Assembly (NCBI GenBank): GCA_038496445.1
Contig: JALMLS010000061.1
Span: 1-64,000, forward strand
DNA from: Trichosphaerium sp. ATCC 40318
Lineage: Eukaryota; Protista; Tubulinea
DNA: 64,000 bases
Direction: 5' to 3'
The notes under the pieces were generated by a model, which worked only from the letters and a program-made list of their open reading frames with translations, was not told the origin of the DNA and made no database searches. A program made the position numbers and the translations under genes. Shown here in pieces: positions 17,858 to 47,478 of this stretch (the stretch's first letter is position 1; the number at the start of each line of letters is the position of its first letter).

Positions 17858-19112
17858 TTAGCTTTGTCCAGTTTGAATTACATTTTCCACGTTTTTTCTT
17901 CTGCTGGCCCAATTGTACGGATAAATACGTTCACGCCATGATGGAATGATCAATGTCAATACCAATATCGCAATCACAAGTAATATAACAAGCACAGTGA
18001 TGACCGCTACAGGTATTATAGGAAAATCAGAACCACCATCTGGTTGAGATGAACAAGATGAAGAAAACAAAATAACTAACTTTCCACGTGTATCTACAGC
18101 AGGTCATTTTAAGGAAAAGCTATAACTTTTGTTTTTCTATCAAGTGTCACTTACTTTCTGTAAAGCATGAGTTGATATTGTCTATAAGCGAGATGTTTTG
18201 TTGGTCAACGACACAATCATCTCTGAAGTTAAACAATGGCAGCATATCGATTTTCTGGAACAGCAACTTAATATTTACAAAACCCAAAGAACTCACGTAC
18301 TTGAACAGCGTTTGTATCAATCGTCACATTCTCGTTGAAAGTAGGACATCCTCCAATTGATATTGAAGACTTTGAATCGACCACAATCACTGTATTCTTT
18401 AGAAACACAACATCTCCTGAGATCAATTAATTAAATTGGTTTGTGAATGTATGTTTTGTACCTGGTGCCGTGTAATTAATCCCTACAACAGAGAACGGGT
18501 TTCTTATGATTATTGGACCAACACAATTAATTAGGGCAGACCTATTACAAGGAAGATCATTGAATCCTAATTCAAATCAATACATTACAACAAACAAAAA
18601 TTAAAATACCATTTTGGCGCATTACAAGACACCTCTCTTGTAAATTAAAAGCTACAAACGTAGGCTCTCCTGTTAGGAAATGCATTTTCAGAAACTGATG
18701 CGAAGTCCCATTGCTGCCAGACATAAATAAATCTGTGTCAAAGAAAGTTTTACCACTACTCTGCCATGTGAGTGATGATAGTGCATCCTCACAAACATTA
18801 CAATCAGTGTCATTTTGTTGACAACTCAAACACAATTTAGGGTTATAATCAGTTGTTTGGTTACGTCGCGCATTAACCCACAGGGTGCCCGTTGAGTTCG
18901 CATTTTGTTTCCAAAATACGTAGTCTTCAACAGTAAGTATTTCCGGGAGTGTTTGGCCACTAAACAAGTATAAGAATAAGAAGGATGCTAATCACGTGCG
19001 TTTGTTCGCAATAATTAGTAGCGTCAGTAAAATTACCAACACTAGACGTATGGACCATAGGTAAGCTTGTATGTACGAGCAAAACAGCCAAATACCAACG
19101 CAAATGAAACAT
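17858..19112 (-). CDS. C-type lectin-domain type I membrane protein
   Basis: Signal peptide MFHLRWYLAVLLV, GNFTDATNYC..LPEI..LWVNA..WQSSG..ERCLVM..FNDLPC..INC, then a C-terminal TM (IIPVAVITVLVILLVIAILVLTLII) and short tail. The first intron needs a GC donor (18999). Confidence 0.75.
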
Positions 19113-19599: not shown

Positions 19600-20700
19600 T
19601 GTTAGCATTGTATGGTTTGAACCATGTTGTTGTGTTATCTTTTGGCCCAATTGTATGGATAAATACGTTCACGCCATGATGGAATGATCAATGTCAATAC
19701 CAATATCATAATCACAAGTAATATAACAAGCACAGTGATGACCGCTACAGGTATTATAGGAAAATCAGAACCACCACCTGGTTGAGATGAACAAGATGAA
19801 GAAAACAAAATAACTAACTTTCCACGTGTATCTACAACAGGTTAGCAAAGAAAGATAATATGAGTTCCTAACAAGTCTTAGTCACTTACTTGGTTGAAAG
19901 CATGAGTTGATGTTGTCTATAAGTGATACGTTTTGTTTGTCAACGACACAATCATCTCTGAAGTTAAACAATGGCAGCGAATTGATTTTCTTGAAGGACA
20001 TTATTAGTTTAACTACAGCTAATGAAAGCAATGCTGCTTACTTGAACAGCATTTGTATCAACCATTACATTCTCGTTGAAAGTAGGACATCCTCCAATTG
20101 ATATCGAAGAGTTTGAATCAACCACAATCACTGTATTCTTTAGAAACACAACATCTCCTGAGATCAATTAATTAAATTGGTTTGTGAATGTGTATGTCTT
20201 TGTACCTGTGCCGTGTAATTAATCCCTACAACAGAGAACGTGTTTTGTAGGATGATTGAACCAACACAATTAATTCGAGAAGACCTGTTACAAGGAAAAT
20301 CATTGAATCCTAATCAAATCAATACATTACAACAAACAAAATTATACTACCATCAGCGCGCATCTCAAGACACCTCTCTTGTAATCCAGAACCCCTAAAT
20401 GAAGGTTCTCCTTTGTTAAAGTACATGTTCAGAAACGTATGCACATTCCCAGTGGCATTAGACAGAAATAAATCTGTTTCTAAGAAAGACTTGCCACTAC
20501 TCTGCCACGTGAATGTTGATAGTGCATCCTCACAAACATCACAATTAGTATCACTTTGTTGACAACGATTACACAAGTCCTGGTCATAATCAGGTGTTTG
20601 GTTACGTCGCGCATTAACCCACACGTTGCCCATTATCGCGGTTGCTTTCCAAAATTCGAAGTCTGCGACATTTAGTATTTCCGGCATTAGTTGGCCACTA
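19600..20700 (-). pseudogene. 5'-truncated, frameshifted tandem copy of the C-type lectin gene
   Basis: Near-identical to 17900-18963. The signal-peptide exon is deleted (sequence jumps from the acceptor at ~20700 to the homolog of ~19220), and there is a 1-nt loss at ~20208 (GCACAG|GT versus GCACCAG|GT). Confidence 0.75.
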
Positions 20701-20762
20701 AACCACTTGCTTCCTTAAGCAAAGTTGTGAATTGCTGGACATTGACTTATTTCTGTAAAATC

Positions 20763-21863
20763 ATGGCACAGCTGCCACCAGAGGTAAAGAAAAAGTCAGC
20801 TGCCGTTGTATACTGCTGCAATTTAACAATTTCTAGCTGTTAGAGCACGTATTTTCCTATTTAGCACAAGATATCTCTGTTTTAAGTCCTATTTCGAATA
20901 CAAGTCGCTACTGGCATGACATTGCAAAGAATATCATAATCAGAAGGCTACAACTAGTGCTTGTATTAATAACCGATTCTGAGTCTCGAATTTATGTTGT
21001 AAACGGCTCTAAAGGTTCATCTGCTATCCAGCTATTGCATACGGTTAACAAGAAACAAAAATGTAAGCAAAAGGGATGGCCTTACTGCTACGGCAGTTCA
21101 AGAGTAAGTTACTAAAGTTAGACAGCGTATTAACGCACAAAGCTGCGTGGTATCCGTATACGAATGGAGAGGAGACACAATTACTTCCTACTCATAACGA
21201 AGATTTACAAAGAAGTTTGTGGCAGGTACGACTGAATACAAAATCACGTGATTTGTTTTTAGTCTGTAAGATGGTCAGCTAATTAAGCTGTTTTAAGATT
21301 TCCAAGTGGTCATGTGGTACCTTTATCAGCTTGCCCAATAGGCTGTGATAATATTGAATCGAGTTTGGATACATCTATTCATTGCAGTATAAATTGTACC
21401 ATTGAATCTTCTTTAGAAGAAGTGCTTACAAAAATATCTGGCAAGTTTTCTTTCTTGCCTGTATTTGAAGAACGCTCCATGCTTTGTGAATACTTTAAGT
21501 ATGTAACTCTTTATTGACATTGGTACTTGTTTAAATGACATGCTTATTTCATTAGGCGAATTGCATATCAACCTGAAACAGTTACTTGTGGAATAAAAGA
21601 AACGGAAGATGCTTTACAACAATGCAAAGTTAAGACTCTTTTAGTTTCATCTCATTTGTTCAAACAAGATCAGAGTTCTACACGTATGTAGGTTCTCCTA
21701 GTACTCTTCTAATATTGTATAATTAGAACCTTGCGAGGCAGGTATTCAGAGATTACTAGCTTATAATAGTGGCAAACATAGACTTGTAACAGTGTCAGAA
21801 TCAACTTGTTCAGGTCGAATGTTTAATCAAGGCTTTGGAGTTGGTGCAATACTGTTTGATTAA
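20763..21863 (+). CDS. F-box fused to degenerate eRF1 middle and C-terminal domains (GGQ absent), 278 aa
   Basis: Exons 20763-20783, 20837-21103, 21143-21225, 21298-21498, 21556-21683 and 21727-21863 total 837 nt in one open frame. F-box QLPPELLEHVFSYL..ISNTSRYWHDIA; eRF1-like RIRMERRHNY, EERSMLCEYFKRIAYQPETVTCGIKETEDALQQCKVKTLLVS and GRMFNQGFGVGAIL. Confidence 0.85.
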
Positions 21864-21999
21864 TCTTCATACTTTTATTTATTGTAATAAATTGCGCATT
21901 CTCACGTACTACAACCAATATCATACTATAGATTAGCGGATATCTGGCCAAGTGTTACTGGAGTATTTCTCTAGCTAGGCATCAATGTACTAACCTGTT

Positions 22000-25276: not shown

Positions 25277-25515
25277 TGCCGCCAATTCTTGTAATTTATT
25301 TTAAAAACGTTTGATAGGAGTCGAATGGGGCTGTTATACGCTTCAACCAGATTTTTTCGGTGTTGTGTAGGCTTCTTCTTGTACAAAAGGCTTCAATTGA
25401 AATAAAACGCGAACTTGGATTTTTTGGTCGTTTTCACCGAAAGTCAGGATTATTAGTTCGACATGCAAACCAGGACCCGAATAGTCCGCTGTTATCGGTT
25501 GTAAATAAACTCAAG

Positions 25516-26650
25516 ATGGCAGAGACACAAATTACAGGCGATAAAGATACTCTCGCAGTAAACCGTGAAGAAAAACCTCAAACAACAAAGACAGAGCTTC
25601 ATGCGCCTACACCTGAATCATGCGTTACTGAAAATCCTAATGCTACGTTTGAAGTGTTTGTAAGCGGCCAACGGTTCGAATTAAGTACAACGAAGTGTTT
25701 AAACTTGGAAGGCTCTGTACTGGCTAGTCTGGCGTCAGGAAGATGGAATAATACCAACACGGATGATTTTAAAAGAGATGTAGAGTGTTTTAGGCTTATA
25801 GTAGAATTTATAGAAACAGGAGAAATAAGAGTACCAGAAAACGTTAGTAGGCAGCTTATTGATGAAGAACTCGATTTTTGGGGTGTAGAAACAGAACCTG
25901 AACATTTCAAGTGGGCGTCGTTACTACAAGAAGCGCGTTACAAAGCTCAAAAGGCACGTGAGTACCTTCAATGTTCTTTCAATTGAAGGGGTAACCTTTT
26001 TACCAGGGTTTACTTAAACGTACAAAAACGCATCTTGCCGGTATTTTTAAAGAGATTAGAATAGCTGCCGCTGAAGGTGCGTATATGGTGGTTGTATTAT
26101 GGGGTTTTTCAGGAGCTCATGGATAACTATAGGGTACTATGAAGTTAAAATGTTTGTACTTTCAAATAAAGATTGGCAAGATTGTTCGAATACAATGGAA
26201 CAAGAAGGTGTCGAATCATGTTATCCTTGTATAGTTGGCGATTGGTATTATTATTGGTGCGTATTTAATAACGTTTTTTTTTGTATTGCAAGCCTTTATG
26301 GTAGCGTGTTTGGCGCACGTGAACAAGAATTTGAAAGTGCAACTGAAATTTGGTTTTAATTCGATCTTTTGTTTCGTCCTTACCTTGAACCTTACTTTGT
26401 ATGTACTAGTGAGGAGTCACCTATGCTTGATATTGTATCAACTATACTTACACGAAAAGGATTTAAAGTCCAATCAACCATGGTAAAAGAAGCAGCTATT
26501 GATATGTCTATTGTAAATGCACATCAACAAAAAGAAAAGAAACGTGTTGTATATACTGAGAACCCATTACAGATCAAAATACAATGGCATGTTGAAGATA
26601 ATACTCTCAAAGATCATGTTGTAAATGAAATGATGCAAGAGTTCTTGTAA
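25516..26650 (+). CDS. BTB/POZ (KCTD/T1-type) domain protein
   Basis: FEVFVSGQRFELSTTKCLNLEGSVLASLASGRW..RDVECFRLIVEFIETG..EELDFWGV; downstream exons run to TAA at 26650. First intron is GC-AG (25954). Confidence 0.8.
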
Positions 26651-45852: not shown

Positions 45853-47478
45853 TTAAGTTTTCCAAACAGTTACACCTCTTGATCTTAATGTATCACAGAA
45901 CTGATCAGTAATACCTGTTGAACTAACACTAGTAATAGACAGGTACTTTAAATCTCTAAGCCCATCGTCTGATACAAGAGGACAACCATCAACCCACAAC
46001 CTTGCTACTCTTTTAAGACACTTCACACCCTCATTTGACACCTTATAACAGCTCGAAACATAAACAGAAGTAGCATCACAGAGTGCTGTAAGCCCATCAT
46101 CTGTAATCTCATCACATTTTGAAAGATCAATTGTTTTGACTCCCTTGAGGCATTTAATACCTTCATCAGTAATAAGAGAGCATCCACCAAGATATATAGA
46201 ATTAACACCACTAAGACAAGATAGGGACACATCTGTTATATTCTTACAACCTAGTAACCTTATCGAGTAAACTCCTGATAAAGCAGAAACACCTTCATCA
46301 GTAATTTTATCACAGTTATCAAGATCAATTGTATGAACACCAGCAACAGCTTTAAGTACCTCATCATTAACTTGTTCACATTTAGCTAGATTAATTGTCC
46401 TTATTCCTTTCAACATTGATAGTATATCAATAGAGTAATGAGAGCAATGCTTGAGTGAAACTTCCTCTAACTTTCTTTTTTCTTGACTTTCTAAAACGAT
46501 TTGAAGACTTTCATCTGTGACTTTACTACAGTTAGATAGAACAAGCGTACTTGCTCCAGCAAGAGGAGATACATCAGTAATACCATCACAATACTTAATT
46601 TGAATATACCTAGCACCTGAAATGAAAGGTAAACCAACATCTGTAATGTTACCACAATCAGAAAGACAAATAACTTCAACGCCAGATAACGCCTTTAACC
46701 CAACATCTGTCAGTTTACAACCACTTAACACTATCTCCTTTATACCTGCTAACTCCTTAATACTATCATCAGTAATCATACTACAACCATTCGTAACATA
46801 AAGACCATCAACTCCAGCGTATGTCTTAACAATTTCATCTGTTAAGCGATGACCACTTAATCTTATCTTACTTAACCCTGCCATTGCCCGTAATCCCTTT
46901 TCTCTAACGCTGCCGCATCCTGTTATATTAAGGTCATCAGCTTGAGGTGCTAGGGCTATGATGACATCGTCTGTGACTTGATCGATGTAGCTGACGTCTA
47001 TTACTTTCGCTCCAGCGAGCTGCTTCAATCCTTCGGATGTTACTTTGTCGCACTTGTATAACTCGATTGAGTGAATGCCTTTAAGCGCTTTTAAGCAATC
47101 ATCTGTTACGTTACTACATCTCCAGATAACCGCGGTTCTAATACCCGCTAACGCCATAATATCTTCGTCGGTGGCTCCAGGAAAGTGTTTGATTTGAATT
47201 TCAGTGTTCTTTAGTAAGTTTTCACGTTTAAGCATCGCATCTATAGCATCTCGGTTGTCTAGCCTTATACAACCGTATCCTACATAACGATATATAACCG
47301 AAGCGAAGAAATGGCACGTTTGAGCGACAGAAAACCTTGATTCTTCTAGAAACTCAAATATGAGTATCAATACCTCAACGGGAAGGCTACCAAACGAACT
47401 AAAATAATATTATTAGAATACACAGCCCAAATACCTGTCAACAACTAACCTGTCATAGATATACGTATTCGCTTCCAT
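45853..47478 (-). CDS. F-box/LRR protein (LxGVxxIxLxxCxxITD repeats)
   Basis: Short exon MEANTYIYD, one intron, F-box-like SLPVEVLILIFEFL..VAQTCHFF, then about 19 LRRs in a single 1.5-kb exon. Confidence 0.9.

Follow-up and report, generated by a model that had tools for sequence, protein, structure and literature searches.

A predicted F-box protein with a degenerate eRF1-type module in Trichosphaerium sp. ATCC 40318

Gene structure and splicing

The window analyzed here is a stretch of 64,000 nucleotides from Trichosphaerium sp. ATCC 40318 (GenBank assembly GCA_038496445.1, contig JALMLS010000061.1, positions 1 to 64,000). On its plus strand, between positions 20763 and 21863, lies a gene of six exons whose predicted product begins with an F-box and continues with a strongly degenerate counterpart of the middle (M) and C-terminal (C) domains found in eRF1, a translation release factor. 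In eRF1 itself, the N-terminal (N) domain reads stop codons through its NIKS and YxCxxxF motifs, the GGQ motif of the M domain hydrolyses peptidyl-tRNA, and the C domain binds eRF3.

We rebuilt the gene model by script. The six exons join into 837 nt, that is, 278 codons from ATG to TAA, and all five introns are of the GT-AG type, so the single 278-residue frame put forward in the original prediction was recovered, together with the peptides quoted from it: RIRMERRHNY, a C-domain stretch encoded by exons 4 and 5, the C-terminal SGRMFNQGFGVGAIL, and GWPYCYGSS. Exon 1 (20763-20783) holds the start codon and the first F-box residues, LPPE, in seven codons (MAQLPPE), and is followed by intron 1 (20784-20836; 53 nt, GTAAAG to TAG), which, if retained, brings a stop at 20841-20843. 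Exon 2 (20837-21103) consists of 89 codons that encode F-box residues 8-41, what may be M-domain strands 1-3, and an enlarged, degenerate form of the GGQ loop ending in YGS-S-R. Intron 2 (21104-21142; 39 nt, GTAAGT to AAG) has an in-frame TAA at 21113, and its acceptor at 21142 is the sole option that is both in frame and free of stops. The arginine-rich helix of eRF1 type, LRGIRIRMERRHNY, is encoded by exon 3 (21143-21225), where it was recognized from PDB matches and with a local eRF1 hidden Markov model (HMM); reading through intron 3 (21226-21297; 72 nt, GTACGA to AAG) meets a TGA after three codons. Exon 4 (21298-21498) encodes the remaining half of the M domain, in shortened form, together with the helix that opens the C domain, and read-through of intron 4 (21499-21555; 57 nt, GTATGT to TAG) also meets a TGA. 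The core of the C domain (the eRF1_3 or "Pelota" domain) is in exon 5 (21556-21683), and, after intron 5 (21684-21726; 43 nt, GTATGT to TAG), exon 6 (21727-21863) completes the domain with GFGVGAIL, to which are added only F, D, and the stop codon, without an acidic tail.

Retention of any single intron produces an in-frame stop or a frameshift, and when we inspected the region between 20300 and 22400 no other start codon or splice choice left the frame open. The probability that 278 codons are free of stops by chance is 3e-9 at the local base composition. Moreover, the GC content at the three codon positions is 0.44, 0.40, and 0.29, respectively, and that of the introns is 0.33. The ATG has an A at −3 and a G at +4, and a divergent open reading frame (ORF) on the minus strand (20319-20687) begins 75 bp away from it. 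At the other end, an AATAAA at 21886-21891, 23 nt past the stop codon, is a possible polyadenylation signal by its sequence match.

Searches of public runs listed no RNA run for the gene, and intron 2 has just 39 nt, so it could be argued that the model is an artefact and that the exons for the F-box and those for the eRF1-like part belong to separate transcripts. We find this extremely unlikely. The whole unit fits into 1.1 kb between the divergent neighbor and the AATAAA, and no other start or splice site yields an open frame. Particularly, exon 2 holds the F-box yet ends inside an eRF1-like motif, GSSR, which is continued by LRGIRIRMERRHNY in exon 3, and the eRF1 alignment passes without interruption from the one exon into the other.

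The F-box and the eRF1-type module

The library searches (Pfam, NCBIfam, and PDB) were run on pieces of the protein, and the full-length work on the spliced protein was done locally. The N-terminal F-box (residues 2-41; positions 20766-20938, split by intron 1) had been anticipated from inspection of the sequence, and it passed two Pfam thresholds: residues 1-48 scored 38.2 bits against PF12937 (F-box-like; cut-off 24.3) and 21.8 bits against PF00646 (cut-off 20.5). Exon 2 alone scored 21.5 bits against the F-box-like model (E 2e-4, profile positions 8-40 of 47). The seven residues contributed by exon 1 are what lifts this score from 21.5 to 38.2 bits, which lends internal support to the splice at intron 1. 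From its motif, the F-box is predicted to bind Skp1.

For the remainder of the protein, we built a local superfamily profile from eRF1, aRF1, and Pelota. The references were one giant-virus eRF1 (obtained with a degenerate DNA pattern of the GGQ region), 120 eRF1 proteins, five archaeal Pelota, and four aRF1 (obtained with a second, looser pattern). Against the HMM of this superfamily the spliced protein scored 39.7 bits, the best of 2000 shuffles reaching 9.5 bits, and the profile alignment placed the M domain at residues 34-119 and the C domain from residue 154. hhalign returned a probability of 96.9% over residues 92-276, and blastp against that giant-virus eRF1 gave one colinear alignment of 39.3 bits, in which residues 93-225 lie on residues 175-317. 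From the HMM, hhalign, and the trees described below, we assign residues 173-278 (21443-21860, spanning introns 4 and 5) to an eRF1-type C domain without the minidomain, and, with the local superfamily HMM, residues 42-172 (20939-21442, spanning introns 2 and 3) to a degenerate eRF1-type M domain. The C domain alone scored 24.0 bits with the local HMM (at most 8.7 bits in 2000 shuffles). Within it, exon 5 alone matched Pfam eRF1_3 at E 7.8e-4 with 20.3 bits, under the whole-protein cut-off of 25.8.

The evidence for the M domain is concentrated around the arginine-rich helix. A 50-mer over the exon 2/3/4 junctions had 17 matches in the PDB, 16 of which were eRF1, with E values of 0.09-1.2 (residues 184-205 of 1dt9_A), and phmmer aligned GSSRLRGIRIRMERRHNY on residues 184-201 of human eRF1; among solved structures, this helix matches eRF1 only. 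The fusion junction within exon 2 was dropped as a proof of the fusion: the M-like part of that exon alone scored just 2.6 bits. Since this is not significant, we rest the fusion on the motif that crosses from exon 2 into exon 3. The search of the pieces in NCBIfam gave nothing relevant, and neither VLRF1 nor any other related Pfam model matched them at E values up to 10. Taken as predicted from these comparisons, the C domain is securely assigned, and the M domain is recognizable mainly through its helix.

The M+C module directly follows the F-box, which takes the position of the N domain: the M alignment begins at about residue 42, the N domain is absent, and there is neither room nor an exon for it. 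In the phmmer alignments to human eRF1 chains and in the MAFFT alignment, Y92-G93-S94 (21089-21097) occupies the position of G183-G184-Q185 of eRF1. GGQ is therefore YGS, with a serine at the position of the catalytic Gln185, in a loop seven residues longer than that of eRF1. Both substitutions, the F-box for the N domain and GWPYCYGSS for the GGQ loop, agree with what the original prediction had proposed. Further losses are about 11 residues from the second half of the M domain, the C minidomain specific to a/eRF1 (about 33 columns), and the end of the protein, where ...GAILFD has neither the RY of GILRY nor an acidic tail. As to what has been kept, we found the KK preceding the loop, the RHNY-bearing arginine-rich helix, and the YF..I helix that opens the C domain, as well as G..E/T..AL, L.V, and F..GFG.G..L. 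The identity to eRF1 is about 24%. Among 84 M+C columns that are invariant over 16 diverse eRF1, 27 are identical in this protein, compared with 36 in the archaeal aRF1 majority and 26 in the archaeal Pelota majority. The eRF1-specific residues that are retained include H200, N201, Y383, F403, and F407 (P0006 numbering).

Because the N domain and the minidomain are missing, the predicted protein cannot decode stop codons, and, with YGS for GGQ and a loop that has grown longer, it almost certainly cannot hydrolyse peptidyl-tRNA. Seven residues of eRF1 contact eRF3, namely R192, R203, F291, I294, Y301, F303, and F406 (PMC2909394). Four of the seven are kept here (R192, F291, I294, and F406), a proportion not significantly above background; Y301 is changed to Val, F303 is changed to Cys, and R203 is lost. 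We also noticed that the 278 residues include 12 cysteines, several of which cluster with histidines in the eroded M part (CKQKGWPYC and CPIGC...HCSINC). Conceivably, these clusters form a new metal site.

We then asked where the module belongs among the members of the superfamily. In a tree of the M and C domains under the LG+C20 model, which included eRF1, Pelota, aRF1, and giant-virus eRF1, the protein is placed with eRF1 with support of 99/94, as the original prediction would have it. Forcing it to group with Pelota, with the archaeal Pelota as comparison, is 8.5 log units worse and gives p 0.036 in the approximately unbiased (AU) test, a marginal value, as is the p of 0.031 obtained when it is forced to group with aRF1. 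The C-domain tree also places the protein with eRF1 (100/100), where it adjoins three giant-virus-type eRF1, P0001, P0002, and P0005 (L001:1069-2346), with support of 95/77, unstarred; this sisterhood may be due to long-branch attraction. The M-domain tree did not settle the placement. The branch of the protein is 7.5 substitutions per site long, and the fact that it joins the group with the shortest branches, and not the long Pelota branches, argues against simple long-branch attraction as the cause of the grouping with eRF1. An origin from eRF1 is likely, as far as alignment and trees can tell, and its statistical force is modest.

An alternative is that the module comes from Pelota/Dom34, where GGQ is naturally absent, or from a Vms1-like release factor, in which case "dead eRF1" would be a misnomer. 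A Pelota origin was suggested by exon 5, which alone matches the C domains of Pelota in the PDB (E 0.03-0.2) and no eRF1. The Pelota HMM, moreover, covers residues 150-276 as one piece, the minidomain is missing as it is in Pelota (PMC2613156), the M domain on its own does not decide the matter, and a fusion of an F-box with VLRF-1 has been published. Nevertheless, we regard such an origin as very unlikely. It is disfavored by both the M+C tree (99/94) and the C-domain tree (100/100), by the AU test in the case of Pelota, and by the eRF1-specific residues that are retained. The protein also has the long loop and the long helix, both of which Dom34 lacks, and RMERRHNY in this helix matches eRF1 only. 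Against a Vms1-like origin speak the Pelota-type C domain and the failure of the VLRF1 model to match any of the pieces.

Constraint, relatives, and possible function

Two public contigs, X1 and X2, which come from a related strain or species and are 95-99% identical to the window, cover positions 20500-20954 only. They retain intron 1, and this points to DNA. Four small differences from the window are common to both contigs, one of them at 20833 in intron 1. Compared with the window, there were no changes in 139 coding nt and four changes in 128 non-coding nt (Fisher p 0.05), a contrast that is a weak hint of constraint. Contig X2 also carries 155 extra nt at 20697-20704, in the spacer between the divergent genes.

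A stronger indication comes from the frame itself. With 7.5 substitutions per site and a 278-codon frame that is still open (chance 3e-9), the divergence seems to have taken place under selection for coding. We infer that the gene is real and nuclear and that such selection has maintained its frame for a long time. Our overall reading, which we consider somewhat better than an even bet, is that of a selected gene for an F-box joined to degenerated M and C domains of eRF1, with a role as an adaptor of an SCF (Skp1-Cullin-F-box) ubiquitin ligase and as a decoy of eRF1.

Several results weigh against this reading. No RNA run was listed, as mentioned above. A phmmer search with exon 2 against 1.84 billion representative proteins returned no matches, the JGI metagenomes contained no relative, and scans of viral contigs found no genuine one. 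The M domain is weak outside its one helix: alone, it scored 9.7 bits with the local HMM, 2000 shuffles reaching at most 6.9 bits, and no piece was matched by Pfam eRF1_2, the 50-mer across the exon 2/3/4 junctions having no match to any Pfam model. Searched with the pieces, the family profiles sustain the F-box, which is above threshold, and eRF1_3 on exon 5, but did not match eRF1_2. The M+C module of the original prediction stands in so far as the C domain is clear and the match colinear, but it is far more eroded than had been implied, as both the 27 of 84 columns and the M-domain score indicate. The loss of R203, F303, the GILRY end, and the acidic tail may also mean that the binding of partners is gone or has changed.

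In the Atlas we found just generic F-box clusters below 0.9, or unnamed clusters, and there is no paralogue of the gene within the window. One apparent viral relative of exon 4, at L013:2970-3462 of a giant-virus metagenome-assembled genome, was rejected as a chance match, being a low-complexity repeat (ILQC/YTTM).

A young orphan or a decaying chimera, in which an F-box exon and a duplicated fragment of eRF1 came together without function and the open frame is a leftover, would account for a good part of these observations: the missing RNA, the failure of the protein, metagenome, and viral searches to find an orthologue, an M domain near the level of noise, and an extreme divergence in which the catalytic residue and several contact residues have been lost. 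We think it unlikely all the same, though it has to be taken seriously. At an identity of only about 24% and with 7.5 substitutions per site, a sequence could not have preserved 278 open codons (P 3e-9), five pairs of GT-AG splice sites, and an F-box that clears its Pfam cut-off unless it was under selection. The GC content varies periodically with codon position, and the 139 coding nt are unchanged in a strain that is 95-99% related.

In the reading that we favor, the F-box would attach the protein to an SCF ubiquitin ligase through Skp1, and substrate binding would fall to the dead eRF1 module. Posing as eRF1, this decoy would capture one of the natural partners of eRF1, which would then be ubiquitylated. 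As the best-kept surfaces, namely the arginine-rich helix, the hydrophobic first helix of the C domain, and the GFGxGxIL strand, are those that face eRF3 and rRNA in eRF1, the target would most likely be an eRF1 partner. The leading candidate would be a GTPase of the eRF3/Hbs1 type, followed by ABCE1, with docking on the ribosome coming next.

The last of these candidates can be developed into an account of its own. The module, alone or together with an eRF3/Hbs1-type GTPase, might enter the A site and bring the SCF complex to terminating or stalled ribosomes, where, acting in quality control, it would ubiquitylate nascent chains or proteins of the ribosome. The best-kept parts of the protein are the arginine-rich helix after the GGQ loop and the L7Ae-like C domain, both of which have been described as contacting rRNA (PMC6514570, PMC2613156); insertion into the A site has also been proposed by Burroughs and Aravind for relatives of aeRF-1 that lack the glutamine (PMC6514570). 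We give little credence to such a ribosome-directed adaptor, considering that the protein has neither an N domain nor a Sm-like domain for the decoding centre, that an F-box bound to Skp1-Cul1 would occupy the place of the N domain, and that the core of the M domain is strongly eroded.

Returning to the decoy of eRF1, the most specific version of the proposal, an SCF complex that uses its pseudo-release factor to seize eRF3/Hbs1-type GTPases or ABCE1, or to dock on ribosomes, and in this way tunes termination or rescue, is doubtful at this point, and we would call it a fairly long shot. If true, however, it would be a ubiquitin (E3) ligase that mimics a release factor, not known in any organism. 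Even short of this, a protein that is made and binds Skp1 would be part of a ubiquitin ligase with a dead core translation factor as its substrate trap, and would connect the ubiquitin system directly, and in a way open to testing, with the termination of translation or the rescue of ribosomes. It would also suggest a general route to new E3 specificities, in which an F-box joined to a decoy of protein X reaches the partners of X. The weight of the case at present is that of a well-supported gene model of an orphan with a predicted function.

Other genes of the window include an ordinary FBXL-type gene on the minus strand (45853-47400), with the F-box motif LPVEVLILIFEFL... ahead of a 505-codon ORF made up of ...C..ITD.GL..L-type leucine-rich repeats. 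On the plus strand, 3.5 kb downstream of the F-box/eRF1 gene, an ORF of 208 residues (25360-25986) matches BTB_2 (KCTD-type BTB/POZ) in Pfam at E 2.6e-8 and is possibly another cullin-adaptor gene. The divergent ORF at 20319-20687 (122 residues) and a second one at 18572-18967 (131 residues), both on the minus strand, are paralogous, Cys-rich, and similar to first exons; they share WVNARRNQT..C..CQQ.DT.C.VCEDALS..TWQSSGK, and neither has a Pfam match. Because the ORF at 20319-20687 starts 75 bp from the ATG of the F-box/eRF1 gene, the two may share a bidirectional promoter.

Comparison with known systems

The protein resembles eRF1 (ETF1/Sup45) in its homologous and colinear M and C domains, in the helix after the loop (RMERRHNY, as against RMEKRHNY in eRF1), in the YF..I helix, GFGxGxIL, and the KK that precedes the loop, and in its position within the eRF1 clade. 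It differs in that the F-box replaces the N domain, in having YGS, in an M domain about 11 residues short, and in lacking the minidomain, the RY, and the acidic tail. With Dom34/Pelota it has in common that it is non-catalytic, without GGQ and without the C minidomain, and that its C domain is similar in length, exon 5 matching that of Pelota. Dom34/Pelota, however, has a Sm-like N domain and a truncated tip of the M domain, without the long loop and helix (PMC2613156), whereas the present protein has an F-box for the Sm-like domain and has kept both the loop and the helix. The predicted protein is consequently no release factor as judged by the N domain and GGQ that define one, nor is it a Pelota by the features that define that family.

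The original prediction had held that no protein of this architecture was described. For the F-box fused to the M and C domains of eRF1 this stands, as our search of the literature found no paper describing it. For the superfamily as a whole it does not: Burroughs and Aravind (2019) reported an F-box on a Vms1-like release factor (eVLRF-1) in Naegleria and in some ciliates, which belongs to the same aeRF-1 superfamily and whose VLRF-1 clade derives from the bacterial bVLRF-1 (PMC6514570). This is the only published fusion of an F-box with a release-factor fold that we found. The two cases are alike in the F-box placed N-terminal to an aeRF-1 superfamily domain, and in their protist hosts. Unlike the eVLRF-1 proteins, the gene product described here groups with eRF1 (in a tree from which VLRF-1 sequences are absent), has a Pelota-type C domain, and has no Gln at the aligned site. 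It would add a second, independent F-box fusion to the superfamily.

Finally, the receptors of the FBXL, FBXW, and FBXO classes share with this protein the order of an N-terminal F-box and a protein-binding module. Their modules are leucine-rich repeats, WD40, or other usual repeats, and the one encoded here is a pseudo-release factor. Considering all these likenesses and differences, the most fitting name for the predicted protein is that of a pseudo-release factor, derived from eRF1 and carried on an F-box.

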